Assembly (NCBI GenBank): GCA_000388065.2
Contig: KB932201.1
DNA: 64,000 nt
DNA from: Fonticula alba ATCC 38817
Lineage: Eukaryota > Protista > Nucleariida
Direction: 5' to 3' (one strand)
The translations under genes were made by a program, and so were the position numbers. Below, piece by piece: positions 7,536 through 56,065 of the stretch (position 1 is its first letter; the number at the start of each line of letters is the position of its first letter). The notes beneath the pieces were generated by a model that was not told the DNA's origin, ran no database searches, and saw only the letters and a program-made list of their open reading frames with translations.

Positions 7536-7994
7536 NNNNNNNNNNNNNNNNNNNNNNNNNNNNNNNNNNNNNNNNNNNNNNNNNNNNNNNNNNNNNNNNN
7601 NNNNNNNNNNNNNNNNNNNNNNNNNNNNNNNNNNNNNNNNNNNNNNNNNNNNNNNNNNNNNNNNNNNNNNNNNNNNNNNNNNNNNNNNNNNNNNNNNNNN
7701 NNNNNNNNNNNNNNNNNNNNNNNNNNNNNNNNNNNNNNNNNNNNNNNNNNNNNNNNNNNNNNNNNNNNNNNNNNNNNNNNNNNNNNNNNNNNNNNNNNNN
7801 NNNNNNNNNNNNNNNNNNNNNNNNNNNNNNNNNNNNNNNNNNNNNNNNNNNNNNNNNNNNNNNNNNNNNNNNNNNNNNNNNNNNNNNNNNNNNNNNNNNN
7901 NNNNNNNNNNNNNNNNNNNNNNNNNNNNNNNNNNNNNNNNNNNNNNNNNNNNNNNNNNNNNNNNNNNNNNNNNNNNNNNNNNNNNNNNNNNNNN
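7536..7994. other. Assembly gap (N run)
   Basis: N run immediately upstream of the alkaline phosphatase ATG. Confidence 1.
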
Positions 7995-9437: not shown

Positions 9438-9502
9438 NNNNNNNNNNNNNNNNNNNNNNNNNNNNNNNNNNNNNNNNNNNNNNNNNNNNNNNNNNNNNNN
9501 NN
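9438..9502. other. Assembly gap (N run)
   Basis: N run. Confidence 1.
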
Positions 9503-14074: not shown

Positions 14075-14280
14075 NNNNNNNNNNNNNNNNNNNNNNNNNN
14101 NNNNNNNNNNNNNNNNNNNNNNNNNNNNNNNNNNNNNNNNNNNNNNNNNNNNNNNNNNNNNNNNNNNNNNNNNNNNNNNNNNNNNNNNNNNNNNNNNNNN
14201 NNNNNNNNNNNNNNNNNNNNNNNNNNNNNNNNNNNNNNNNNNNNNNNNNNNNNNNNNNNNNNNNNNNNNNNNNNNNNNNN
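14075..14280. other. Assembly gap (N run)
   Basis: N run. Confidence 1.
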
Positions 14281-18963: not shown

Positions 18964-19508
18964 NNNNNNNNNNNNNNNNNNNNNNNNNNNNNNNNNNNNN
19001 NNNNNNNNNNNNNNNNNNNNNNNNNNNNNNNNNNNNNNNNNNNNNNNNNNNNNNNNNNNNNNNNNNNNNNNNNNNNNNNNNNNNNNNNNNNNNNNNNNNN
19101 NNNNNNNNNNNNNNNNNNNNNNNNNNNNNNNNNNNNNNNNNNNNNNNNNNNNNNNNNNNNNNNNNNNNNNNNNNNNNNNNNNNNNNNNNNNNNNNNNNNN
19201 NNNNNNNNNNNNNNNNNNNNNNNNNNNNNNNNNNNNNNNNNNNNNNNNNNNNNNNNNNNNNNNNNNNNNNNNNNNNNNNNNNNNNNNNNNNNNNNNNNNN
19301 NNNNNNNNNNNNNNNNNNNNNNNNNNNNNNNNNNNNNNNNNNNNNNNNNNNNNNNNNNNNNNNNNNNNNNNNNNNNNNNNNNNNNNNNNNNNNNNNNNNN
19401 NNNNNNNNNNNNNNNNNNNNNNNNNNNNNNNNNNNNNNNNNNNNNNNNNNNNNNNNNNNNNNNNNNNNNNNNNNNNNNNNNNNNNNNNNNNNNNNNNNNN
19501 NNNNNNNN
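18964..19508. other. Assembly gap (N run)
   Basis: N run. Confidence 1.
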
Positions 19509-20050: not shown

Positions 20051-21988
20051 TCAGTTGATCTCGATGTTGAAGATGTCCGAGTAGATGGCGCGGTCCTCCA
20101 GGATGGACGGGTCCTCCGGGTCGATGCGGTTGAAGTGGAAGTCGTACAGCGGGAGCTCCTTCATCGGCGGCAGGACATCCATGTAGGGCATGATGTGCTC
20201 GACCATCGGCGAGTTGGCCCCCTGGTCCTTGTGGTAATTGACACCCTTGTCACGATAGTTCACCACGAAGGCCTGGCCATCGGGGAAGTTCGTGTACAGG
20301 GCGTAGTACCCGCGCTCGGCCGCGAAGCGCATGAACCAGGCCGACCAGACGGCTCGGCCGCCGCCACGCGCCAGGAACCAGCTGTTGGTGATCATGTTGC
20401 TGAAGAGCGGCTGGAAGGAGGGGTCGCTGGATTTCTCGTTGAACCTGGGAGAGAGGGAGATGGAGAGCGGGCGGTGCGCACACGGCAGGGTACCAGGGGG
20501 GGGGGGACACAGGGCCAAGCATTGGCGGTGGCCCGAGGGGGGACGCATTTATGTTTGCGCGTGTGGTGTGTATGTGTGTGTGTGTGTGTGCGTTTGTTAG
20601 TCGCCGGTGTGTGAAGCTACTCATCTTGGTGTGTGCGGCCCTTGTTGTGGGGTGGAGTCCCCTGCGTGCCCCCCCCCTCCCCGCCCCCCCCCCCAGAGTG
20701 ACCCCCCACACACGCGACCAAACACATCGCGAGCCCCCGAGAGACAGGTCACCATTGCCGCCTGCCCCACCCCTCCCCCCTTCTTCGATTCCCCTCTCCG
20801 AGTCTCGTGGCCCAAAATCTCGACGCCTCACCGCCATCTGCGCGCATGACACCGTCGGGACTCTTCCCCCGCCCCCCCTCTCTCTCTCTCCCCCGCCCGA
20901 CTGCCCAATCGTCGATGGGGCCCTCCACACACACACACAGCAGGGCATACGCACCAGGAGATGAACTCGGCCCAGTGGTGCGGGAAGAAGACCGGCCCCC
21001 AGGTGCTGAGCAGCTGGTAGCGGAAGAACTTGGCGTCGTGCGGCAGGAACTCCTTCGGGCGCTTGGGGTACCGGCCCGGGATCATGTGCTGGCTCTGCAG
21101 CATGATGCCATACACTCGCGGGTCAAACTGCTCCGGATTGAAGTAGTAATACTCGACGGCGCGCTTGAGCCACACATAGAAGTACGGGCTGACGATGTTG
21201 TCGTCCTCCAGGATGATGGCGATTTCGGTGGTGCCCATGGGGAACCAGGAGGCCAGCCACTGGCCGGCCAGGCCGTAGTGCTTGTCACGGGCGTGGACCT
21301 GCTTGCGGCCATGGCGCCAGCGGTACACCTCGGACATCTGCCGCACGCGGGCATACTCCTGCAGGGAGATGTCCGCCTCGTTGTTCGGGTCATTCTGCTC
21401 CAGGGTGGCATTGGCCACCAGCTCCGGCGACGGGAAGTCGATGTAGATGTCCAAGTCCACCTTGTCTCCCATGAAGTCCGCCGCATCCAGCGACCGGAAC
21501 AGCCGGAGCAGGGCGCGCGGCCGGTTGAAGGCGATGATCTTCACCGTCAGGCGGAAGTCCTTCACGGTGGCCGGAACCGGCCCGTTGCCGGGGGACAGGG
21601 CCGCGGGGCTGCTGGCCAGGGCGCGCATGCCGCTGGACCCGCGCGCCGGCGGCCCGGTCACATGGGCCAGCGGCAGGGTGTACGGCGTCGGGGCCTGCAG
21701 CCCGGGGAAGGCCTGGCACCGGAGGTCATCATCCACCAGCCACATGGAGATGTTCATGAAGCGCTGGCGCTTGTTGTCCACGCCGATGATGTAGTTGTTG
21801 TGGATGGCAGCCGGCCACTCGCCGTTCTTCTGAGACAGCTTGTCAATGAAGAAGCTGTTGTTCGATTGTGGGTGTATCCCCCCGCCCGGTCCGTAGCCGC
21901 GGCCGAGCGCCGAGAGAGGGTGCATTTTGCGTTCTGATGTCAGTGGGCGTTGTCACTTCGGATCTTCTCTCTCTTCCTCTCTGTGGCA

Positions 21989-22045
<57 letters not shown>

Positions 22046-24306
22046 ATGTGTGTCTGCGGGAGCGGGTCCTCAGGATCGCAGGATGATGCTCCCTCGAAGG
22101 CCCCCCCCTCCCCTCCCCGCCCCCCGGTGGCACACTGCTCACGCCGATGACCACGCACCGCTTGCCATCAGCCACCACCTTCTCGTCGATGGTGCCCCAC
22201 TTGATCTCGTCCGGCTTGGCGGCCTTCAGCAGCTCGTTGACCAGCTCCTGCTCGGTCATGCTGTGGATGTTGAAGTTCTCCATGGCCTGGATCTTCTTGA
22301 AGACGGTCCGGTGCTGAAGCAGGACCTTGACCCACAGGGCGCGCGCGGCGTCGGTCGCCCGGAAGTAGATGAACCCGCCGGTGATCTTCTCCACCTTGTG
22401 GGCACCGCCCTGGATGTCCAGGTTCCGGTCGACAAACTGCAGCGGGTCGCGCAGGAACACCACGTCCACGTCCGACAGCAGGACATTGTAGCCCTTCTGC
22501 AGGATCTTGTAGATGAACTCGGTCCGGCTGTTCATCAGGGCCTGGTACGCCACCGACCCATAGTCGTAGGCCTTCTCGCGGGGGGTGCCATCGGCGGCGG
22601 TCTCATCGGCGGAGACAATGAACGAGCCATTGGCCGACTGGGCCAGCAGGGCCTTGTACTCCAGGGCGATGTTACTCTCGTAGTAGATGACCGGCAGGCC
22701 GCGATCGCGCAGGATCGTGTACATGGCCCGGTCGGTGGCGTGGAAGAGGAAGTTCTTCCGGCCAATGCGCAGCAGGGTGCACATCCAGTTGATGGAGAAG
22801 TCCAGGTAGCCGGAGTTGACGGTGGCCACGATGACATCGCGCGTCTGCGGGTCGGCCTGCTTGGCCAGCATGACGTCGATGGACTGCTCCTTCGGGCGCA
22901 GGGTGCAGAAGGGACACGCCCCGGAGGGGGCCGAGGAGGTGGTGCTGAAGTCGGCGCCGGGCCGAGTGAACACCGACGGGGCCGACTCGCCGGCCGGCAG
23001 GTTCTTCGGGCTCAGGGCATTGCCCGGGGAGTTGGGGATCGGCGCCAAGTAGTAGTCGCAGGACTCCACATCGCCGAGCTTCTTCGGGTCAACGGCATCG
23101 GACTTGGTCAGGTTGATGTTGTAGTCGGTGCCGGAGCGCGAGTGGCTACCTCCGACCTGTGGCGCGTGTTGCGGCGCGTGGGGCAATGTCCCAGGAGGGC
23201 AGGGCGGCGGGGACGTGGGGTTAGCATCTGAGGGAGGGCGGGCGTTCTCGGGGGATGCCCCCCCCCCGGGCAAGGTGGCACCCGAGGGGACGGGGATTTG
23301 GCCAAGTCCCGCGCGGTGGCACATACCTTCATGTGGTTGAGGTGCACGGCGAAGACCACCTCGGTGGCATCGACGGCCGCGGCATTCTGATTGCCGATGA
23401 ACTGCGCCAGCAGCCAGTTATCCCAGCGGACCTGCAGCATTCCCCCCCAGCCCCCGGAGCGGATGGGTGGCAAGGTGCGACACCGGCAGGATGGTGATGG
23501 CCGAAAGCGCGAGCCAAGATGCCGATGCGGGGGGTTTCCTCTTGGTGTTAGAGTGCCACGGAGCAGCATCATAAAGCGAGTCGCTTCTCCCGGGGTGGGG
23601 GCGGGGCCTTGGCGATGGCAGGGCGTGCTCGGGTGGCGTGTGGCACGGCGGCCAGGTGGGCCACAGAAAAGAAGAAGAAGAAGAAGAGGGGGAGCATGTC
23701 ATGTGTAACGCACACGGCCAACGATGAAGGGCGGCATGGGGCGGGCATAGCGGGTGCGGTACAGGAAGTAGTCGATCCCATACTTGCCGTGTGTCTTGCC
23801 GTAGCGTTCGACCTGTGGAAGGCCGCGGCGGGGGCGCGATCGTGGCAGGGCGATCAGCCGGGAGGAAGAGGCGCACGCCTGCGTGTCAGTACCATTATCG
23901 AGTGGTGTGCACCGGGTTTTTTTTCCCCTCCACTGGGCATCTGCCCATCTCTTTTTCTTTCTCTCTCTCTCTCTCTGTCTCTCTCGACCCCTTCCTGGGA
24001 GAAAGAAAGGGCAGCCACTGCGGCGCGCTCGCCCTCACGGGTGTGTGCACAAAGAAAAACACGCGACGCGAAGGGGGGGCGATGACAATGCGTGTTCCAG
24101 TGGACGCACGGTGCGCTTGAAGTCCTCGCGCCACATGGGGTTGTTGAAGTCAATCAGACGCGGGTACAGGATGTCGATGCGCTGGCCGACCATCAGGAAG
24201 TCCTCATGCTGGGAGGCAACCTATCCGGCCGAATTTGGCCAATGGACGGAGTTGATCGGGCAGTGGGTGGCGGGATGAAAGATGCATCAAGTCAGCACAC
24301 GGAGGA

Positions 24307-24341
<35 letters not shown>

Positions 24342-25641
24342 TCCCCCCCCTCACACCGGGAGGATATCCCCGAGCGGCGGGCCGTCTCTGTTTTTCTTCC
24401 CCCCAGCGCTTGATGTTTCTCCGAGCGGAGCACGCACCGAATGCATGGCATAGAGGATGTCCTCGAAGTAGACCATGTCCGAGTTGGAGTACATGATGTA
24501 CTCGGTGTCGGCCAGCTCGGCGGCCCGGGCAAACAGGCAGTCGTAGCGGGGGACATTGAGCTCCGGGTGCATGCAGGGCACCTGAAGACACACCGCCCGC
24601 GAGGGGGGCACGAACTGCGAGTGTTTTTTTTTCCCCACGTTAGAGTTCAATTCCACCGGTGGGCGTTCGGCTGGGATAGGAGAGGAGGAGTGCAGGGAGG
24701 GAGGGGAGCAAAGCAAGCTGGACGCAGGGGGTGTGCGCCGCCCCCCCCCCCCCGACCAGGGGAGAAAGGTCGCCCAGTGGGTGGGCAGCGGTGTACGGCC
24801 AGATCGCCGCAGCCGATTGGACTCTCTGCTTGTCTGCTTATCTCCACATGTGTGCGTGCGTGCGTGTGTGTGTGTGTCTGGGCGCGTGTGTGCGCATACG
24901 CACCGACATGACGAAGTCGCAGCTGCGCTCATCACCGAACAGGATGATCTTGACCCCGGGCAGACGAACCCACGACTGGATGGCGTTGTATGTGTGCAGG
25001 GTCTCCAGCCAATCGGTCTGGGTGTTGCCAGCGAAGTTGATGGAGTTCAGGTCGGTGACCGTCAGCTCGCGCAGAATGGTCCAGATGGTCAGGTCGCGGC
25101 CGAGGGTCGGATCCCCGGGGGGGAGGATCTCCCGCGCGGCCGGGTGGTCGGTGAATTCGCTCGGGCGTCCGGTGACCGAGGCCGAGGTCAGGGGGCTGGC
25201 GCCGCTGGAGCCGAAGTACGGCGAGGAGGTCCGGGCCGAGGGGTGTCGGGGCGTCGGCAGCATCGGGCCCGACCAGGGGGGGGGGGGGGGGAGGGGGGAA
25301 AGACGCGGCAAACCAGCAGGCCACAAGGGACCAAGGCACGCGATCCATGCATGTGTTAGCTGACGCTCGGCGGCCGGGGGTGTCCTGTTTTTTTCCCCGA
25401 CAGGCCAAGCTGGCCCACGGGGTCTGGCAAAGGGGGAACAAGCAGGCATTCCGGGTGCGCGCACACTCTCCCGTACCATGCCCATGTTGTAGGAATCGGC
25501 CGGGCTGCCGGAGGAGGCAAAGAAGGCCACCGCGCCAATGAGACCGACCAGGACGAGGCCCACCATGAGCATCGAAGACATCAGGCGTCTCCTGGGCCGG
25601 GACGGCGTCAGGGCGATGGATTCGCCCCGGGAGTGTCGCAT
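20051..25641 (-). CDS. Type II membrane, three-domain glycosyltransferase (uncharacterised GT-A domain + Nucleotid_trans/GT77-like domain + GT2-like domain), about 1,070 aa
   Basis: Exons 25641-25477, [possible 5-nt exon 25423-25419], 25204-24904, 24581-24438, 24220-24110, 23812-23714, 23431-23327, 23156-22159, 21854-20955, 20444-20051 join in frame. Domain 1: NAIQSW..YSNSD..FLMVGQRID..GIDYF..PPFIVGRVRWDNW..DAT..HLNH. Domain 2: NSGYLDFSINW..GYNVLLSDVDVVFLRDP..TGGFIYFR..EQ..IHNNYIIG. Domain 3: IIAFNRPRALLRLFRSL..WRHGRK..LEDDNIVSP..STWG. The first two junctions are the least certain. Confidence 0.85.
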
Positions 25642-25696
25642 GTTTGACAAGCTGCGCGCTTTGGCTCGGCGGGACTAACCAGCTACTGTGCCTGTG

Positions 25697-25756
<60 letters not shown>
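25697..25756. repeat. (TGCG)15 microsatellite just upstream of the glycosyltransferase start
   Basis: Direct reading of tandem TGCG units. Confidence 0.95.
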
Positions 25757-28497: not shown

Positions 28498-31400
28498 ATG
28501 GAACGTGTACGTGTGTTCCGCGCCATCTGTGCCGCCATGCTTCCTTTCCACCCGCTTTCTCTGACCCCCCCCCCCCCCCCCCCCCGCCCCCCCGGCCGCC
28601 CCTCCCCCCGCCTCGTCCTCCACCATCACTTTGCCCATACNNNNNNNNNNCCCCGCCTCGTCCTCCACCATCACTTTGCCCATACGGAAGACGGCTACCA
28701 TCTTTGTTGTCGCGCGTGGCGGCGCCGGGCCGCGAGAGCAGCGCGAACGGGCGCTCAGCTTTGTGCGATTGTTCCTGGCCCAGCGGGCCATTGACGGTCG
28801 GCGGTCCGAGTGCGCCGGTGTTGTATCCGCTGACGGGGTCCCGCCGCGCTTGATCGACGATTTCCCCGATCTGCAGGATGCCGGAGCCGGGGCCGACCCC
28901 ACGCAGCAGGCCCCATGCGTGCTGGTGCCTCTCCAGCCGAGCGCGCGTCCCGGGCTCGAGCGAGTACATCGCTATGGCCAAGCGCTGCCGGCGGGGCCGC
29001 CGGACATGGCCGACGGGTTGTCGCCCTTCCGGCCGGTGGACTGGCTGGCGGCGCTGGCTTTCGCCCGGGAGCTCTTCTTTGCCTATCGGCTGAGCAACCG
29101 CCGGGTGACCTTCCACTTCAAGCGCATCGTGCTGGTTATGCCCTTCTACGGGTGCATCCCCGGGGATGGGATCCTGTCGGGGGAGTGTGAGGATCCGTCA
29201 CTTGCGCCGGAGGCTGAGCCAGCCATCCGGCACATATTCCAGCGGCTAGACGAAGACAACATCGTGTTGGAGGTGCTGTGCGTCTCTTTGCCGTTGTCTC
29301 TTTCTCCCCCTCTCCTGGTTGCACTCTCGAGAGGGCTTTCTTTCACTGCCCGCGCATGCATCTCTGCACATCCACACACCTATGCATGTGTGTGTGTGTG
29401 TGTGTGTGTGTGTATCCGTACATTCGTACACTCACACCTCTGTACATTTGTCCACCTGTATATTCACACGTCCGCACATCTGCACATGCGTCGCGGCGCA
29501 ACGTAGCGACATCGGATCTGGCGTGCCGCACATCATTTCGCCCATCTCCACCACCCTGAAGCTGGCCTTGCCGACGGTGACGACCTTGCTGCCGCCGGCG
29601 CCCAGCCCGCGCCCCGTGTTCAAGGGGCCGCTGATAATCGGCTCGCCGGCCTGTGCGGCCTCCAGCCGGAATGCCTTCCACACGGAGGACCACCATCCGG
29701 CCGGGCTAGAGCTAGAGGTGGCGGTTTTCGCTCGAGTTGGCACCCCGCGCACGCTCACCTACAAGCTGGCGTTTCTGCTGCCCCCGGCGGCCGGGGCCGC
29801 TGCCGGGCCAGGGCCCAACGGCAGCGATGCCGGTCAGTACCGCCTGCTGCCGTTGGTGCTGGACCGGGTGCCGGTGCGTGCGGCCGAGCGCACTCTCGGC
29901 GGCCTGGCCACCGGCGATCCAGCCGATCAGGACCCGGCCATCGTCCCGGCGGAGCACCTGGCCCGAACGTACCGCTATGGGAAGCAGCGCATTGCCGTCA
30001 CCCGAGCCGATGAGCTGATCGCCGCCGCTGGGGCTGGCTGCCCGGCCGAGGCGGAGCGGTCCCTGCAGCTGATCTGCTTCTTTGAGGCCCGTAGCTTGCC
30101 CCCGGCTTTTGCCCTGCACGCTGGACCCACCTACTGGATGGTGGCTGTGGGCGCGCCGGCGGAGGCCACCACCCCGGGGGGGCCTGGCGCGGGCGCGTGC
30201 CCGCGCGGCACGGCCCCGGCCAATGCCCTGGCGCTGGCCCACCTCGTTGGGCACATGCGCCTGACCGGGCGCATTGCCCTGCTCCGGTATGTGCGCGTCA
30301 GCGGCGCAGCGCCACAATTGATGCTGGCACGGACCCAGCCGGGCACCGATCGGCCGGTCCTCCTGCTGACGCGTCTGCCCTTTGCCGGGGAGGTGTTGCA
30401 TTCGGCGGTGCCGGGGTCTGGCCGGCTCCGACGGGCGGTCCAGGCGGCCAATCCGGCGGCCGATGCCGCCATGGACGCCCTCATCGACCAGCATCTGGCC
30501 GCCGAGGCTGGCGCGATTCCCCTCAAGACGGAGCTCGACCCGGGGGCAGTTCCCCGGGCGGCCGATGTGCCCGGCTCCGCGGGCCGGGAATTGCCGCTGT
30601 TCCGGAGCCCGAACTACGCCCTGCAGCGGCACTTGGCCCTGTGCCTGTTGGTTCCCGAGGCAACTGCCTGGCTGCCTCCCCTGTCGACGGTTCTGGGGCC
30701 GATCCTGCCGGAGCCCGGGTCCGGGCCAAAGGCCGATCCGCTGGCCGGGGTGTTTGCCCTGCGCAAGCGTCCTGCCCTGGGGGAAGCCGGATTGGAGGAT
30801 GGGCCGGTTGCGGCCGGGGCCAAGCGCCCGGCGGCCCTCTCGACTGGCTTCCGCAGCCAGGACACCGAGGCTCGGGTCCGGTCGATCATGTCCTCGCGGC
30901 CGGAGCTGGCGGTGCTGGACAAATTCCTTCTGGCCACCGGGCCGGTGGCCCTGCTGGCGGCCCTGCCTCGGCATGGCTTCCAGCCGGCACCCGGGGCCGG
31001 GGCCGGGGCCAGCGCCAGCGGCGGCAGCATGGCCGGCGTGGCTGGCGCGGGCGGCGCGGTGCCACTCCTGCAGGCCGCATGTGCCGAGCTGGTCGAGTGG
31101 CTGGGCGCCGGGGCCGATCGTGGTGGCCGGGCAGCCGAGCTCCCCGGCGAGGCGGATGCCTGGCTGGCCTTGAGGGCATTGTCTCTGCGCGAGCGGAGCC
31201 ACGACATTTATGACTCGGCGCTGGCGGCGGCGCAGGCGCGCGGGTCGCTGGCAGCGCTCCGAGCCCCGGGGCCCCTCGGCCCGGTGGCCCACGACCCGGA
31301 TGATGGCCAGGACCTGATGGAGTTTGCGCCGGAGATCCAGGCCCCCGGCACCGGGCTGGCGGCCCTCCCGGCCACCCTACAAGCTGGCTTCCATTCCTTC

Positions 31401-31638
31401 CCCTCCCAGCCGCTGCCCAGCCAGGCGTCCCTGTCCTCCTTGGATGGGGGGGGCGTTGGGTCGGCTGCCTTCGGCCACTCGGCCATGGCCGACGATCCGG
31501 AGGGCGACCTGGTGCGCTTTTTGCTGGGCCATTCTCCCCACGCCGGCCTCCCTGCTTCGCTTGTCGCCACTTCACGGCTCCTCTTTCTGACGCCTGGCCC
31601 TGACCCCCTCTCTCGACCAGTTTGCCGACCTGGACTAG
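28498..31638 (+). CDS. XRCC5: Ku80 (NHEJ DNA end-binding subunit), strongly diverged
   Basis: Exons about 28498-28506 (start uncertain), about 28691-29277, 29507-31511, 31621-31638. Core motifs PVFKGPLIIG, YRYGKQRIAV, LQLICFF, ALLRYVR..APQLML..LPFAGEV, AMDALID, SPNYALQR. C-terminal helical domain and acidic/hydrophobic tail DDPEGDLFADLD*. Confidence 0.8.
28641..28650. other. 10-N gap with an overlapped 35-bp duplicate on both sides
   Basis: 28606-28640 is identical to 28651-28685. Confidence 0.95.
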
Positions 31639-31954
31639 GAGAGGCCCTTGGCTCGCGGGCCCGGGGTTCCATGCACATACACATGTGTGCATGTATGTCT
31701 GTGTGCGCGCGCGCGCGCGCGTGCATGCAGCCGCCCCAGGCCCCCCCCCCCGTCCCCTGGGAGGAGGGAATATACCCTGCTCCAGAAGCACATGCATGTG
31801 TTCATGTGTGCGTGCATGTATACGTGTATTGGTGCATGGTCGAGGGCCGCGGGGCGACAGGGTACTGTCCCTGGATGCGCGCCGGGTGGGCCGCTCGCTT
31901 GCTTGAGCACGGGCGCGGCTCCAAGACAGAGGTCTGCTCCGCCTCGCCGGGCCC

Positions 31955-34057
31955 CTACTGACCGGTGTCGCCGGCCCCGCGGGAGAAAACCATCTGCGAG
32001 GCGACAACCACATGCGAAAGGGGACTTCCTGCCAGGGAGGGCGGGGCCATGCCGGCCACAATCGGGTGCGGCGGGGCCGGCATGTCCGCCGGGGGCGAGG
32101 GATGCGCCGGCCCGGCCCCGGTGGTGGGTGGCTGAGGGGTCGCCTCGTCGACCGGGGCCGGCTGCATCCGGGCATTGATGTACGAGGACATCAGCTGGGT
32201 GAGGCGGTTCGGCTGCCGGAGCGCGATGGAGAGGGGCACCCGCATGGGGGGAAGAGAGAGAGAGAGAGAGAGGAGAAGGGAGGGGCAGGATCGGCCACAG
32301 GAAGTGGCACACACACATGCATACAACGAAGCGGTCAGTCACAGGGGAAGGGCGGGGGAATGGCCACCAGCAGAGCCGGGGGGCGGGGGCGGAAAAGCGC
32401 AAACAGGCAAGACCCCGCGCGCCGCGGCGGCACACGCACCGCCAGCATGTGGAAGTAAAGGCGCGTCACACCGTGCACCGGGGACTGGGCGCGGAGAAGG
32501 TCCCGGCCGCTGTCCTGCCGGGCAAGGGCCGGGTCCAGCAGATCCGTGTCAGTCGGCTCCGGCTGACAGGCCGAGGCCAGGAGCTGGAGCAGGGTGGCCT
32601 GCGACCGGGACTCGGCCACCAGCAGCGTGAAGACGCCCACATGGGTGCCGGCCCCGGGGCCGGAGGCCGGGTCGCCGCCCAGCCCGAAGGCGATCAGGCT
32701 GCCCGGGGCCGAGGCCGACTCGACGCCCGCGCCGAAGAAGTTCAGGTGCCTGTGGCTCATGGTCGGGCTGCCGATGAGCCCGGCCACGAAGTGCGCCCCG
32801 GCCGGGGCGTGGTAGTAGTCGGCCGCGGCCGCGGCCGCCCCGCCATCCGAAGCCAGCATGTCGGCCTCGAGGATCGGGTCGCCACCGGCCGCCAGGCCGC
32901 CGGCGCCCTGGCCGGCTCCCCCCGGGCCGCTGGTGCCGATGCTTGACAGACTCGATGTCGACAGGGACAAAGAGCTGCCATAGAGCGAGCCGGGCCCGCC
33001 GGGGCCGAGGCTGGCACCCATGCCCGGGCCGCCGGCGCCGGCGCCGAAGGACCCAAGCGAGGGGGCCGAAGCGGGAGCCCCGCCGGGGCCGAGCAGGTCC
33101 TGGCCAGGCCCCGGGCCGCCGGCCGCCAGGCCGGCCAGATCGCCCGCGTGCCCGTGGAAGGGGGTCGACGCGCCGAAGGGGAAGTACGACCCGAAGCCCA
33201 CGAGATGCTGGTCGTACTGGTAGTCTGCCACCACGGCCAGGGTGTCCGGGTTCATGAGGCTGATGCCGTCGTGGCGCACGGCCAGCAGGACCGTCTGGCC
33301 CCCGGCCTCGGCCGCGAAGAAGGACGACCCGCATAGGCGCCACCGGCGGAAGGCCCCGAGGAAGATGCGCATGCATTGGTGCGCGGTGCGGCCCTTGAGC
33401 CGGCGCCAGTTGTCATGGAAGCCATTGCTCCAGGAGCTCATGGTGGATTCCTCGCGCAGGCGCATGGGCAAGAACCGATCGAAGGCGAAGCTGTTTCCGA
33501 AAGGGAAGCCAGGCGAAGGGTCAGAAGGAAGGCACACAGGAGCACACAGCGGCCAGGGCGAGATGGCCCGAGGGCGCCTGGGGACAAGGGGGAAGACACA
33601 GGCGTGTGGTTGGCCATTGGGGCTCTTTTCTTGGTGTCATGTGTCTCTCTCACCCCCCCCCCTCCCCCTGTCCCCGGTAATGGAGGCAGCAACACAAGGA
33701 TGGCCACATGCACGAACCGAGATTTCTTGTTGGAGGCGGCACCACCGGAGGCGCTGGCCCCGGTCGGGGTGGCCCCCGAGATGGCCTCATAATCACCCCA
33801 CTTCGCCTGGGACATGACGGCCACGAGGAAGGTGGCCGTCTCAATGGCGACCGGCGCCATCGAATGGGTGAACTGCCGGCCGGCGATCAGAGGGGGGGGG
33901 GGAGGGCGCGAGCACGGCCGGGCCCGACGGCGAATCGGATGTCAGAGACCATGGGCAAGTGGATAGAGGCACACATGCCAGTGCGCGGCGCCTGCTGTGC
34001 GTGCCGGTCGCGCGGAGGCCAAGGATGGGTAGGAGGAAAAATGGGGAGCTTCGGCCG

Positions 34058-34116
<59 letters not shown>

Positions 34117-37100
34117 CGGCTCCCTCCGGCCAGCCGCTCACAAAGAGACGCCTGCGTACCTGGTGCGTGTAGTAGCCATAGAGGAGCTCCAGCTCCGAGG
34201 GGGTGGCCGTGGTGAAGACCCCATCATCACCGATGTTGGACTCCAGCCGGGCCGGATTGAGCGGTCCATTGAAGTCATGCGTGACCCCGGTCAACAGGGG
34301 GGTCACCGTGTCGGACAGGGTGTCGAAGGTCTCATTCGGCAGGAGGCGCGGCCGCAGGGGGAAGAGGACCTTCGGCCGGAAGACGAAGACCAACGGCTCG
34401 GAGGACACCTCGCCCCAGGCGCGCATGTCATTCATGAGGCTGTGGTACACATCGGGCAGGGGGCCCGTGTTGCCGGAGGTCCCGTCAGCCGGCCGGCGGA
34501 AGGACGCCAGCCGGGCCTCGAGGTCCTGCAGCATCGGCCGGGCCGAGGCCGAGGTCGAGCCCCTGACTCCGGGACCGGCCGGGAGGTGGAGAGCACCGGC
34601 GCCGGGCCCGGGCCCGGCCCCGACCGACCCGGCCCCGCTGCCAGCGGACCCGGCGGCCCCGGGGCCGGACAGACGCGATCCCTTCATGCCGTAGGCATGG
34701 AGGTCATCCTCGACGCTGTGGATGAGGTCCGCCACGCGGGTCCTCGGGCTCAGGGGGAGCTCCAGCTGCCCGGTGCTCATGGACACCAGGAACAGGCCGT
34801 AATCCTCGCGCGAGGTGAGGCAGAATTCCAGCTTCTCCGACTGCACCACCCGGTCGATGAGATCCGACACCCGGGCATTGACCGGCAGGGCCACGTGGAC
34901 CAGCTTCTCGGTCAGGACGTCCGGATCGTCGACCGACCGGGGCTTGGCCGATACCGGCATCTGGAGCTGCACATACACCCCGAGCGGCTCGAGGTTCAGG
35001 CGAACTCGCGATTCGACCTACGGCGGCGAGGTGGGGAGGAGACGCGGAGTGGGGGAGGAGGAGGAGGAGGAGGAGCATGGTCGGTCAGCGGGAGTCGGCG
35101 ACAAGGGCAACCGAGGCGGCGGCCGGTCCGAATGAAAGCAAACATGGTCCATAGGCGCGCCTTGCCCACCCCCCCCCCCAGGCCACCCATCGGCCGGGCA
35201 ACGCACATTGATCACGGCCAGGATCTCCTGGCGGCTGGGGACAAGCGCCCGCTCGGCCGGGGGCGGCTCGTCCGGCCGGCCGGACCCCTCGGCAGCCAGG
35301 CGGGCCGCCTCAATCAGCCGCTGGACCGTATGCAGGGAATAGGCTGCCAGCATGGCCGAGGCATTTGCGTCCTGGTTGGCGGCACAGCGCTGCAGGTGCG
35401 CCAGCAGGTAGTCGCGGACGGTGGTCCGCTGGGGCAGGAAGGCCCCGCACATGATGGCAATCAGGTGCCAAATCTGGATGTTGTGGGCACTGCTCGGGTA
35501 GGGGTGGTTGCAGGATTGCTTGATCAACTGCAGGTACACCTCGCTGCGGAGCTCCGGCACCGCCACGCAGCGCTGCAGGATGGATCGAGCCAGGCCAATG
35601 TGATAGCCAATGCCATTGACCGTGGCCGGGGTCTTGGAGCCGCCGGAGGCAATCGACAGGGAGGCCCCGCCGGCCACGGAGGGCGGGATGGCGGCGGCGG
35701 CCCCGGGGCCGGGCTTGCGGCTGATCAGCGTCGAGGCATAGCGCTGGATCAGGCGGAAGAGCTTCAGCGCCTCGGACCGGATGCGCGGCGTGAAGAGCGT
35801 CGACAGGGGGTGCAACAGGGGCTCCCGGGTGAAGACCAGCAGCGGGATGGCCTCGGCCAGCGACTCGAAGCCGCAGTCGCGCACCCGAGCCGACCAGGCC
35901 TCAAACAGGGCCGCCGGGTCGATGGAGCCGGCCGCCCCGCCGCGCGGGCAGTACAGCCCGGCGGTGGTGGCATCGCGTGCATAGAAGAACCGCATGTCCA
36001 GGCTCGGGTACTCGGCGCGCATGGCCGTCAACGCGTGCACCAGGCGCTCGGTCGGCGAGCTGAGCGCCGCATTCTCATTGCACACCAGCTGGATGTGGGA
36101 CATCCAGTGGAAGGCGTCCGAGGCGGTTAGCGCCTCGAAGAAGTACGTCTTGAAGGGGTCGGCCTTGAGGACACTGGTGGCGGCGGCCACCTCGGCCTCC
36201 GGCCGCGGCACGCGCAGCATGAACATGACCACCCGGTCGCCGGGCCGGGTGCCGGCCCGGGGGGACCACCCGAGCCCCTGCGAGGGGTGGTGCGTCACGG
36301 AGAAGAGCTGCGGCCCGGACATCGGGCCTCCGGCGAAGGACCCATGGCTGGGGCCGAGGGCCGACATGCCGGCACCGGAGGCAGCCATGGGCCCGGGCCC
36401 GGCGCCCCCGCCACCGGAGCCACTGCCACTGCCGCCGGACATGGCGGCCATGATGCTGGAGGTGCTGGGGACGCGGCCGCGAATGCGCAATGTCGACCCG
36501 AAGACGCCCTTGCGGCTGCTGCCGGCCGTCGAGGGGGCCGCACTGACGGCCGAGCTGATGGACGAGGTGGATACCGTCGAGGCGGTGGACGACTGGCTGG
36601 CCTTGCGCATGAGCGAGGGGCTGGCGCGGGTCTTGCTGGCGGCCGGGGTCCCGGCGGCGGTCGGCGGCACGAACAGGTTCTCCAACTGCTCGCAGCCGCC
36701 ACCGACCGACCCATCGGAGGAGGTGGAATTGAAGGTGGCCGTCAGGTCCAACCCGGAGCCGGACTCGCCGATGCTGCTCAGCTGCGAGGAGGATGACAGA
36801 TCCCGGCCATGGTGTGGCAGGTGCTCTGGCATGTCGGCCGGCAGGGCGCCCAGCGGGCCGGCCCCGGCCGGAGCCAGCGACGTCAGGGCGTCGTCAAACT
36901 CCGAGTCCGACTCGTTGTCCGGATTGACCAGCTCCACCACCGTGGCCCGGGTCAGGTGGATGACATTGACCGGGCGTTCGTCACGCGGCGACCGGTAGTA
37001 GTAGAGCCCGCTTGGCTTGAGGACGACCCAGCGTGTGGCGGAGAAGCCTGGACGATGGAGGCAGCCAAGACGGGGGGAGGAGGGGGGGGGGGGGAGGGGG

Positions 37101-37836
37101 GCAGCGGAGGTAGGCATCAGCAAGCTGGCAGGAGACGCGCGCGTCGGGGGCGCAGGCGGGAGGGGGAGTTTCTTGTGGCGTTGTCGCGGGCGCACCGTTC
37201 TTGTGCTTGATGAGCCAGCCCTGGGTGATGATGTCCCCGCTGTTGGCCAGGGGCCCGGTGTCAGCCGGTGGCGGGACCGAAATGACGGCCTGTGCGCATG
37301 GAGGGGAGAGATGAGTCAGTGGGCCGAGGGGCAAGGTGTGGCTGCAGTGGTTGCGGGAGGAGAGGAAGACCGGCAGGGGGGAGGCGAAGGGGGAGGAGAT
37401 CCGGCCGAGCACACGCACGTCACGCTTCGCCACCAGTGACAAGGCCCGGACCCACTGGCGCATATCGGCATCCGACACCGGCGAGGCCAGGTGGAAGACG
37501 CGTTGCGGCGTGTGAAGCTCGAAGGTGAAGGGCTGGAGCTTGGACGAGGAGGAGGAGGGGGGCGGCCCGGCCGACGAGGCGATCGACAGGCCGGAGAGCC
37601 CGGTGCCCGGGCCGCCGCCGAGGAGACCGCCAGCGGGCAAGTCCCCGGGGGTCGACTTGTCCGGGGTCTGGGCCAGCACCGCCAGCAGCGATCCACCCGA
37701 GAGGGAGATGTGCCCGATGGCGCTGGCGCCGGAGACCACGTCGTCGGCGGACTTAAAGTACCAGAGAATCTGGTGGCGCAGGACGAAGTACCGGCTCTTC
37801 CAGGACTGATATGGGGAGGGGAGCCGATGTGCGTGC

Positions 37837-39678: not shown

Positions 39679-39844
39679 NNNNNNNNNNNNNNNNNNNNNN
39701 NNNNNNNNNNNNNNNNNNNNNNNNNNNNNNNNNNNNNNNNNNNNNNNNNNNNNNNNNNNNNNNNNNNNNNNNNNNNNNNNNNNNNNNNNNNNNNNNNNNN
39801 NNNNNNNNNNNNNNNNNNNNNNNNNNNNNNNNNNNNNNNNNNNN
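39679..39844. other. Assembly gap with duplicated flank
   Basis: N run; 39533-39566 is identical to 39845-39878. Confidence 0.95.
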
Positions 39845-54426: not shown

Positions 54427-55122
54427 NNNNNNNNNNNNNNNNNNNNNNNNNNNNNNNNNNNNNNNNNNNNNNNNNNNNNNNNNNNNNNNNNNNNNNNNNN
54501 NNNNNNNNNNNNNNNNNNNNNNNNNNNNNNNNNNNNNNNNNNNNNNNNNNNNNNNNNNNNNNNNNNNNNNNNNNNNNNNNNNNNNNNNNNNNNNNNNNNN
54601 NNNNNNNNNNNNNNNNNNNNNNNNNNNNNNNNNNNNNNNNNNNNNNNNNNNNNNNNNNNNNNNNNNNNNNNNNNNNNNNNNNNNNNNNNNNNNNNNNNNN
54701 NNNNNNNNNNNNNNNNNNNNNNNNNNNNNNNNNNNNNNNNNNNNNNNNNNNNNNNNNNNNNNNNNNNNNNNNNNNNNNNNNNNNNNNNNNNNNNNNNNNN
54801 NNNNNNNNNNNNNNNNNNNNNNNNNNNNNNNNNNNNNNNNNNNNNNNNNNNNNNNNNNNNNNNNNNNNNNNNNNNNNNNNNNNNNNNNNNNNNNNNNNNN
54901 NNNNNNNNNNNNNNNNNNNNNNNNNNNNNNNNNNNNNNNNNNNNNNNNNNNNNNNNNNNNNNNNNNNNNNNNNNNNNNNNNNNNNNNNNNNNNNNNNNNN
55001 NNNNNNNNNNNNNNNNNNNNNNNNNNNNNNNNNNNNNNNNNNNNNNNNNNNNNNNNNNNNNNNNNNNNNNNNNNNNNNNNNNNNNNNNNNNNNNNNNNNN
55101 NNNNNNNNNNNNNNNNNNNNNN
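54427..55122. other. Assembly gap with duplicated flank
   Basis: N run; 54326-54395 matches 55123-55192 with one substitution. Confidence 0.95.
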
Positions 55123-55630: not shown

Positions 55631-56065
55631 NNNNNNNNNNNNNNNNNNNNNNNNNNNNNNNNNNNNNNNNNNNNNNNNNNNNNNNNNNNNNNNNNNNNNN
55701 NNNNNNNNNNNNNNNNNNNNNNNNNNNNNNNNNNNNNNNNNNNNNNNNNNNNNNNNNNNNNNNNNNNNNNNNNNNNNNNNNNNNNNNNNNNNNNNNNNNN
55801 NNNNNNNNNNNNNNNNNNNNNNNNNNNNNNNNNNNNNNNNNNNNNNNNNNNNNNNNNNNNNNNNNNNNNNNNNNNNNNNNNNNNNNNNNNNNNNNNNNNN
55901 NNNNNNNNNNNNNNNNNNNNNNNNNNNNNNNNNNNNNNNNNNNNNNNNNNNNNNNNNNNNNNNNNNNNNNNNNNNNNNNNNNNNNNNNNNNNNNNNNNNN
56001 NNNNNNNNNNNNNNNNNNNNNNNNNNNNNNNNNNNNNNNNNNNNNNNNNNNNNNNNNNNNNNNNN
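55631..56065. other. Assembly gap (N run)
   Basis: N run between two microsatellite-like ends. Confidence 1.

Follow-up and report, generated by a model that had tools for sequence, protein, structure and literature searches.

The window, a 64,000-nucleotide stretch of contig KB932201.1 from Fonticula alba ATCC 38817, carries on its minus strand (25641–20051) one gene that, read from the sequence, consists of eight exons separated by seven canonical introns. The eight exons, when joined, give a coding length of 3507 nt (1169 codons) with no internal stop; the introns are 170–510 nt long and are bounded by GT..AG in all seven cases, with GTGCGT donors in six and GTATGT in the other, and with NCAG acceptors throughout. 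Exon 1 (possibly exons 1 and 2; 24904–25641) begins with the ATG at 25641 and encodes a short basic cytoplasmic tail, a transmembrane segment and a Pro-rich stem, followed by the opening part of the first glycosyltransferase (GT) module, D1; this part extends from DLTIWTIL (25095) to ILFGDERSCDFVMS, and its start was placed by alignment with stand-alone and fused relatives (alignment A5). In the Pro-rich stem (25476–25130), no in-frame GT..AG pair using pyrimidine-tract acceptors was found, and 25641–24904 was for this reason taken as one exon; frame and domains are the same whether the stem is a single exon or in-frame donor–acceptor pairs are considered. D1 continues through exons at 24438–24614, with N-S-D (24485–24477) in the place taken by DxD in GT-A domains; 24110–24208, with a GQRID block (24187–24173) conserved in the alignment with relatives; 23714–23812, with conserved GIDYF (23779–23765) and PPFIVGR; and 23327–23431, with RWDNW (23428–23414) and the conserved His of VHLNH (23344–23333). 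Exon 7 (22159–23156, ending in phase 2) contributes the C-terminal end of D1, SHSRSGTDYNINL, with its conserved YN..L; a linker then leads into the second module, D2, the larger part of which (from VIVATVNSGY at 22835 onward) is encoded here. Exon 8 (20955–21854, also ending in phase 2) completes D2 with FFIDK...HNNYIIG (HNNYIIG at 21802–21782) and, after a linker, encodes the nucleotide-binding half of the third module, D3 (FRLTVKIIAFNRP at 21556), with an EDD motif that is conserved in alignment A3. The last exon (9; 20051–20444) supplies the C-terminal half of D3, PLFSN...WSAWFMRFAAERGYYALYTNF...YDFHFN, and the stop codon TGA (20053–20051); its identity to P0001, P0006 and P0013 is 54–68%. 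The neighboring genes (Ku70/80-like and MyTH4/PH) have no link to glycans.

An earlier note on this DNA had proposed that segments appearing as separate open reading frames (ORFs) splice in frame into a single polypeptide. The three junctions it quoted are all real, have GT..AG borders and are bridged by ORFs of relatives: HLNHMK|VGGSHSR (23327|23156, phase 0), PPFIVGR|VRWDNW (23714|23431, phase 0) and DGKR|FFIDK (22159|21854, phase 2, with the Arg codon divided CG|C). Continuous ORFs of relatives in fact span all seven junctions, E2|E3 and E3|E4 in L005 (2931–3323), E4|E5 and E5|E6 in L005 (3411–3728), E6|E7 in L001 (87–677, in which the RWDNW exon is likewise unbroken), and E7|E8 and E8|E9 in P0001, P0002 and P0013. 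Moreover, two exons straddle module borders, exon 7 joining the D1 tail to GT77 and exon 8 joining the GT77 end to D3, which excludes separate genes at the DNA level. Together with uninterrupted three-module ORFs in the relatives P0031 (L002), P0019 (L003) and P0014 (L004), these exons bear out the single polypeptide, and 25641–20051 is confirmed, as far as the DNA can be read, as one real gene for a predicted membrane-anchored three-GT fusion protein.

The N-terminal transmembrane anchor claimed in the same note was also recovered. One hydrophobic segment lies at residues ~20–42 (25572–25516), with a mean Kyte–Doolittle value of 2.64 over 19 residues, and no further segment of the product exceeds 1.6 in a 19-residue window. 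The anchor is preceded by RPRRR and followed by the Pro-rich stem, giving the type II layout of basic N-terminal tail, single transmembrane segment, stem and luminal modules. This supports a type II (N-terminal signal-anchor) membrane protein of ~1170 residues with three predicted luminal GT-A modules; the topology is also the sole ground for a presumed Golgi location.

Exons were searched singly, and whole domains were studied via intronless relatives. The central module, D2, is a GT77 domain by its match to PF03407 (Nucleotid_trans), which in exon 7 reaches 66 bits (cut-off 22; E = 6.2e-18) over profile positions 5–172; the remaining positions lie in exon 8, as seen via P0001 (profile positions 142–208), and in P0014 the match is full (4–208). 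The DxD of D2 is followed by ..DP in LLSDVDVVFLRDP, with DVD at 22472–22464. GT77 is a retaining family, and those of its members that have been characterized transfer alpha-Gal, alpha-Xyl or Araf. The known enzymes of the family carry a single GT domain, joined in AgtA to a beta-propeller, whereas here GT77 is flanked by two other GT modules. The Pfam family and the DxD are shared with Dictyostelium AgtA and the plant enzymes RGXT1–4, RRA and XEG113, and with the plant members also the luminal or Golgi-type setting predicted from topology; RGXT activities are listed in PMC12168206. When exons 1, 7 and 8 were searched by sequence against the PDB, no genuine match and no GT77 chain came up, the matches of Fab light chains to the exon-7 linker being due to chance (GSHSRSGTDYNINL against GSGSGTDFTLTI-like sequence).

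For D3, there was no Pfam match in the exons of the window or in P0006, and the threshold of PF03071 (GNT-I) was not reached; sub-threshold GNT-I matches occur in 4 of 42 relatives (best E = 2e-4), and the A3 profile matches POMGnT1 weakly (E = 3.2e-4). The AF2 model of D3 from P0006 (pLDDT 94.9), which is 54% identical to the window in exon 8 and 68% in exon 9, superimposes on GnT-I (1foa) with a VIA Z of 18.8 (233 aligned residues, r.m.s.d. 3.6), on POMGnT1 (5ggi) with Z 18.7 and on GnT-II (5vcm) with Z 16.6, compared with ~13 for other GT-A enzymes; Foldseek matches it to the GnT-I-type fold with E = 2.5e-9. D3 can thus be assigned, with confidence as to its predicted fold, to a GnT-I/GnT-II-like GT-A module with EDD at the metal site, E103, D104, D105 and ~20 other columns being nearly invariant in A3. 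These structural neighbors are inverting beta-GlcNAc transferases. Along its entire length, D3 has the GT-A variant of the GT13/GT16 enzymes (GnT-I, POMGnT1 and GnT-II), and it shares with them the EDD at the metal site; at ~16% identity, however, it is a separate family, one that comprises at least 3790 cluster representatives, stand-alone mollusc proteins among them.

D1 has no Pfam or NCBIfam match, PF00535 included, apart from one in the stand-alone homologue P0170 (E = 0.082). No match came from a word search in which the D1 of a relative was used by itself; stand-alone homologues of bacterial type surfaced only in a profile search. The AF2 model of D1 from P0031, a relative's domain and not the window's own sequence, has a pLDDT of 89.8 and a pTM of 0.90, and matches K4CP with Z 16.0 (215 aligned residues, r.m.s.d. 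3.4) and SpsA, ppGalNAc-T2 and BcsA with Z 13.9–14.2; LARGE1 and CHSY3 are also among its structural neighbors. The model thus points with confidence to a GT2-like GT-A fold, in a family that has no Pfam model.

The three modules had been described as unrelated, and so they are as sequence families: Pfam sets D2 apart, and hhalign finds no relation in sequence between the profiles of D1 and D3 (probability 0.1%). Beyond sequence families the description does not apply, because the GT-A fold is common to all three modules, by Pfam assignment for D2 and, for D1 and D3, by models predicted on relatives' domains that are 25–55% identical to the window; the shared fold itself carries no information on donor or acceptor. 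Likewise, the three acidic motifs were found where the note had placed them, N-S-D at 24485–24477, DVD at 22472–22464 and EDD at 21208–21200. That each module has its own metal/nucleotide-sugar motif is borne out in the canonical form by DVD and EDD, but D1 has N-x-D and not DxD.

The D1–GT77–D3 fusion, in the same order, is present in at least 14 of the best 150 cluster representatives (50% identity), including Hyaloraphidium and complete Gloeochaete transcripts, and recurs in chytrids, in an alga of the glaucophytes and in numerous uncultured or environmental microbial eukaryotes; three-module MMETSP transcripts are among the relatives (for example P0164, marked type:complete). By sequence, the architecture is conserved and not unique to Fonticula alba. 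In other lineages, such as the red alga P0138, GT77 and D3 are fused in the opposite order, an arrangement suggesting that the fusions arose independently and that the modules are functionally coupled; versions of 2000 residues also exist. The literature on Fonticula glycosyltransferases, on GT77 multidomain proteins and GT13 fusions, and on PF03407 yielded no description of this architecture, and no protein with D1 or D3 appears in a survey of early-fungal GT77 that was based on Pfam. Within the GC-rich genome itself (31.3 Mb, 214 contigs), GT77 and D3 are each confined to this gene. The D1 of P0031 matched nothing there; this search missed the present gene too and is therefore uninformative on D1 paralogues.

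We consider it fairly probable, from sequence and models, that this is a single-copy gene for a type II GT2-like/GT77/GnT-I-like protein whose modules are all catalytic and act sequentially on the same acceptor. D1, D2 and D3, with putative donor sugars and order of action, would work successively on one acceptor in the secretory pathway; their joint product may be a repeat unit or else a glycan that is short and defined, and the fusion would keep the stoichiometry and proximity of the three modules.

The form of the D1 motif bears on an alternative that we regard as unlikely without being negligible, namely that only one or two modules are active enzymes and that D1, or another module, is a GT-A pseudo-enzyme, an acceptor or nucleotide-sugar binder or a scaffold, a part played by accessory GT-like domains of certain multidomain enzymes. 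The motif reads N-S-D, and the canonical DxD of GT2 enzymes is absent, which would suit such a role; against this, N-x-D is the form found family-wide: most fused relatives and the stand-alone proteins P0168–P0171 retain N-[GSA]-D, and in the bacterial-type P0168, P0169 and P0171 there is no further domain from which activity could come. The remaining conserved features of D1 (GQRxD, G[IV]D[YL]F, RWDNW and a His) also occur in stand-alone homologues, and all conserved blocks are intact in the window's gene, with canonical DVD in D2 and EDD in D3. More favorable to a pseudo-enzyme are the fused relatives P0014, P0015 and P0016, which keep the three-module layout with the D1 motif lost (HPE, ESN and EAG) and the GQRxD and GxDYF blocks partly lost, so that D1 apparently can be dispensable or non-catalytic, and the outcome of the Pfam, NCBIfam and word searches, which found no characterized relatives of D1 or D3.

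Improbable, in our judgment, is a processive polymerase of a repeating extracellular polysaccharide, for example of the sorocarp stalk matrix, as opposed to an enzyme that builds a short glycan on proteins or lipids. Two-GT polymerases (K4CP, heparosan synthase and LARGE1) are indeed among the structural neighbors of D1, but the single transmembrane segment offers no membrane channel, a combination of three distinct linkages is met more typically in a defined oligosaccharide or side chain, and relatives are found in stalkless organisms (the glaucophyte, chytrids and, as D3 alone, molluscs). The last point shows that organisms other than stalk-formers have the fusion too, though in Fonticula it could yet serve the stalk. 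An artefact of the gene model, in which two or three adjacent genes are only seemingly spliceable, is hardly tenable: a further intron may exist in the 5' stem region, but the straddling exons, the in-frame bridging of seven junctions by relatives' ORFs or transcripts, and the lack of a start and anchor of their own in both D2 and D3 argue against it.

With at least two GT-type domains predicted in one polypeptide, the protein falls among the multi-GT fusion proteins. LARGE1/2, EXT1/2, the chondroitin synthases and PgtA of Dictyostelium are bifunctional type II Golgi GTs whose tandem domains work alternately or successively; the present protein shares their type II tandem-GT layout. All of these have two modules, compared with three here, and belong to other families (GT8 + GT49 for LARGE1/2, GT2 + GT74 for PgtA, GT47 + GT64 for EXT1/2 and GT31 + GT7 for the chondroitin synthases). 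The chlorovirus PBCV-1 protein A111/114R, of ~860 residues, has three putative transferase domains of ~300 residues, and the proposal for it is that they attach three sugars of a single glycan one after another (PMC7826918). It resembles the present protein, as does A064R, in being a three-domain polypeptide that builds a glycan, a function that is putative here; it is, however, viral and soluble, its modules are an LgtC-like GalT, a K4CP-like XylT and a GT-B FucT, and the architecture is not homologous.

Multi-GT fusions reveal which enzymes share a glycan, and this one links GT77 to two GT-A families that are unmodeled in Pfam and NCBIfam, so that domain-based surveys see the Nucleotid_trans part only. 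Extending the proposal, we suggest tentatively, and with some doubt, that D1–GT77–D3 may be an old, conserved eukaryotic three-enzyme glycan assembly line (Holomycota, glaucophytes and many uncultured protists) that makes a three-sugar product and includes two GT families unmodeled in databases. One characterized member would provide the first activities for the D1 and D3 families and would direct attention to a glycan of protists and early-branching fungi that is conserved yet undescribed; as the sole GT77 and sole D3 gene of its organism, the gene described here is a clean target. The relatives with four or five modules (2100–2550 residues) would, if the proposal is true, extend the assembly-line logic further.

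The gene on the minus strand between 25641 and 20051 encodes a protein with a signal anchor and three GT-A modules, D1, D2 (GT77) and D3, all of them intact, a set that has stayed together across distant eukaryotes. Its reading frame runs from an ATG at 25641 to a TGA at 20053–20051 through eight exons: 25641–24904, opening with the ATG, 24614–24438, 24208–24110, 23812–23714, 23431–23327, 23156–22159 (exon 7, as the first is counted as possibly two), 21854–20955 (exon 8) and a last exon at 20444–20054. Exon phases are compatible, the coding sequence sums to 3507 nt (1169 codons), and the seven introns (170–510 nt) all end in CAG, with six GTGCGT donors and one GTATGT, in GC-rich eukaryotic DNA (64% in the gene, 68% in the window). 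A further intron may lie within the Pro-rich stem (25476–25130), because CTAAC and a C-tract are present there; no in-frame GT..AG pair in this stem fits these signals, and each of the stem-intron options considered preserves the frame.

The earlier note had read these segments as one spliced polypeptide, and the three junctions and three acidic motifs (N-S-D in D1, DVD in D2, EDD in D3) that it quoted lie where it placed them in the window. Exons were searched one by one, and relatives without the introns were sought. Metagenomic proteins recovered with exon 8 (P0001, P0002, P0013 and others) read through ...DGKRFFID... and ...FxSW...KSSxxxFxPLFSN..., and at one relative's locus (L001) a single ORF contains PPFLVGRIRWDNW and VHLNHMNIGASHSRCGTDYN and continues into the GT77 domain. 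The other four module-1 junctions are bridged by two ORFs on the contig (L005) of the closest relative, P0013, and in three relatives (P0031, P0019 and P0014) the whole protein is one unbroken ORF. The P0031 group includes MMETSP transcripts from the glaucophyte Gloeochaete; P0164 is labelled ‘type:complete’. Judged by these sequence comparisons, the splice junctions are real. Moreover, exon 7 comprises the conserved C-terminal tail of D1 together with GT77, and exon 8 the end of GT77 together with D3. At the DNA level this rules out separate genes, and the single polypeptide is borne out both by these exons, which straddle the module borders, and by the relatives' bridging ORFs.

The description of the three domains as unrelated holds in that they belong to different families, no sequence relation being found between the D1 and D3 profiles, but not at the level of fold, since one fold class is common to them. 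D2 belongs to Nucleotid_trans/GT77, scoring 66 bits on PF03407 (cut-off, 22), and carries an LLSDVDVVFLRDP motif. D3 has no match in Pfam or NCBIfam; its profile retrieves 3790 proteins at E ≤ 1e-3 and 606 at E ≤ 1e-30 among 1.84 billion representatives. The complete D3 of a relative, P0006, which is 54–68% identical to the window's exons and was used as a stand-in, gave a predicted model (pLDDT 94.9) that superposes best on GnT-I (Z 18.8, 233 residues aligned, r.m.s.d. 3.6), POMGnT1 (Z 18.7) and GnT-II (Z 16.6), whereas generic GT-A enzymes score clearly lower (Z ~13). The family profile also matches POMGnT1 by sequence (E 3.2e-4), 4 of 42 family members give sub-threshold matches to PF03071, and a language-model look-up named GNT-I-like clusters. 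The EDD of D3, in ILEDDNIV, is nearly invariant.

No model was found for D1 in Pfam or NCBIfam. The D1 of P0031, from an intronless locus, is predicted to form a GT-A domain (pLDDT 89.8, pTM 0.90) with GT2-type enzymes as structural neighbours (K4CP, Z 16.0; SpsA, ppGalNAc-T2 and BcsA, ~14), and the window's five D1 exons cover it end to end. The DxD position is N-x-D throughout the family. The main alternative to three active modules is that D1 is non-catalytic. Indeed, in three fused relatives (P0014, P0015 and P0016) the N-x-D and adjacent blocks are degenerate (HPE, ESN, EAG), and D1 in these proteins may be decayed or non-catalytic. However, the window copy is intact, retaining all conserved blocks (N-S-D, GQRID, GIDYF, RWDNW and the His of VHLNH), and N-x-D is also the form used by homologues that stand alone, both bacterial-type proteins of ~290 residues and one type II protein.

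In at least 14 of the best 150 cluster representatives, sequence matching D1 exons is followed by GT77 and then D3, as in this gene; named carriers of this order are found in Hyaloraphidium curvatum (KAI9033218.1) and among the transcripts of Gloeochaete. GT77 and D3 are also present in Blyttiomyces helicus RKO89338.1, where BLAST with the D1 exons gave no match. D3 precedes GT77 in P0138 (from the red alga Purpureofilum), P0072, P0060, P0058, P0052 and P0044, which suggests that the same two modules were fused independently in reverse order; such fusion would be a classic sign of action in one pathway. In three eukaryotic metagenome proteins (P0131, P0064 and P0080; 2104–2547 residues), GT77 is present as two or three stretches, alongside a piece of D1 and, at the C terminus, D3; these appear to be four- or five-GT fusions drawn from the same module set. 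D3 also occurs alone in bivalves and one gastropod (Dreissena, Mercenaria, Gigantopelta, Sinanodonta and Pecten), as stand-alone type II proteins of ~350–375 residues (P0011, P0032, P0049, P0057 and P0063) annotated ‘uncharacterized protein’. Neither GT77 nor D3 occurs elsewhere in the organism's genome (31.3 Mb, 214 contigs).

The three modules would probably be luminal enzymes of the secretory pathway, with D1, GT77 and D3 adding three sugars in turn to a common acceptor; the linkage formed would, by analogy, be retaining for GT77 and inverting for D3. A polymerase or builder of stalk matrix, which the earlier note raised, is a possible but unlikely alternative; the fusion is also present in organisms without stalk formation.

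Multi-GT polypeptides are an established kind, including LARGE, PgtA, EXT, chondroitin synthases and bacterial O-antigen enzymes. The chlorovirus proteins A064R and A111/114R are further examples, each with three domains (PMC7826918). No description of the D1–GT77–D3 composition was found in the literature that was searched. In early-diverging fungi, a Pfam-based survey reports Nucleotid_trans in GT77 proteins either by itself or together with GDP_Man_Dehyd or Branch, so that no D1- or D3-containing architecture appears in it (PMC8778642). The chief value of the gene lies in tying two unmodelled GT-A families, D1 and D3, to GT77; being single-copy, it is a clean target.

The linker at the start of exon 7 (23156–23100, GSHSRSGTDYNINL) draws hundreds of weak PDB matches with antibody light chains (E ~1e-3), a chance likeness to the GSGSGTDFTLTI framework. 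Eight N runs occur in the window, one (18964–19508) ~540 nt downstream of the stop and the others at 7536–7994, 9438–9502, 14075–14280, 28641–28650, 39679–39844, 54427–55122 and 55631–56065; they represent gaps in the assembly or else sequence that was withheld. Neighbouring long ORFs match Ku70/Ku80 beta-barrel (29319–31961, plus strand, E 4e-9) and MyTH4 and PH domains (35018–37195, minus strand, E 6e-20), both unrelated to glycosylation. (CA)n and (GA)n microsatellites mark the introns and flanks of the gene, with tracts in five of the seven introns (for example, 21993–22038, 23960–23987 and 24303–24338) and none in those at 23713–23432 and 23326–23157; a 60-nt tetranucleotide repeat, (CGTG/GCAC)n, lies at 25696–25755, ending ~55 nt before the ATG.
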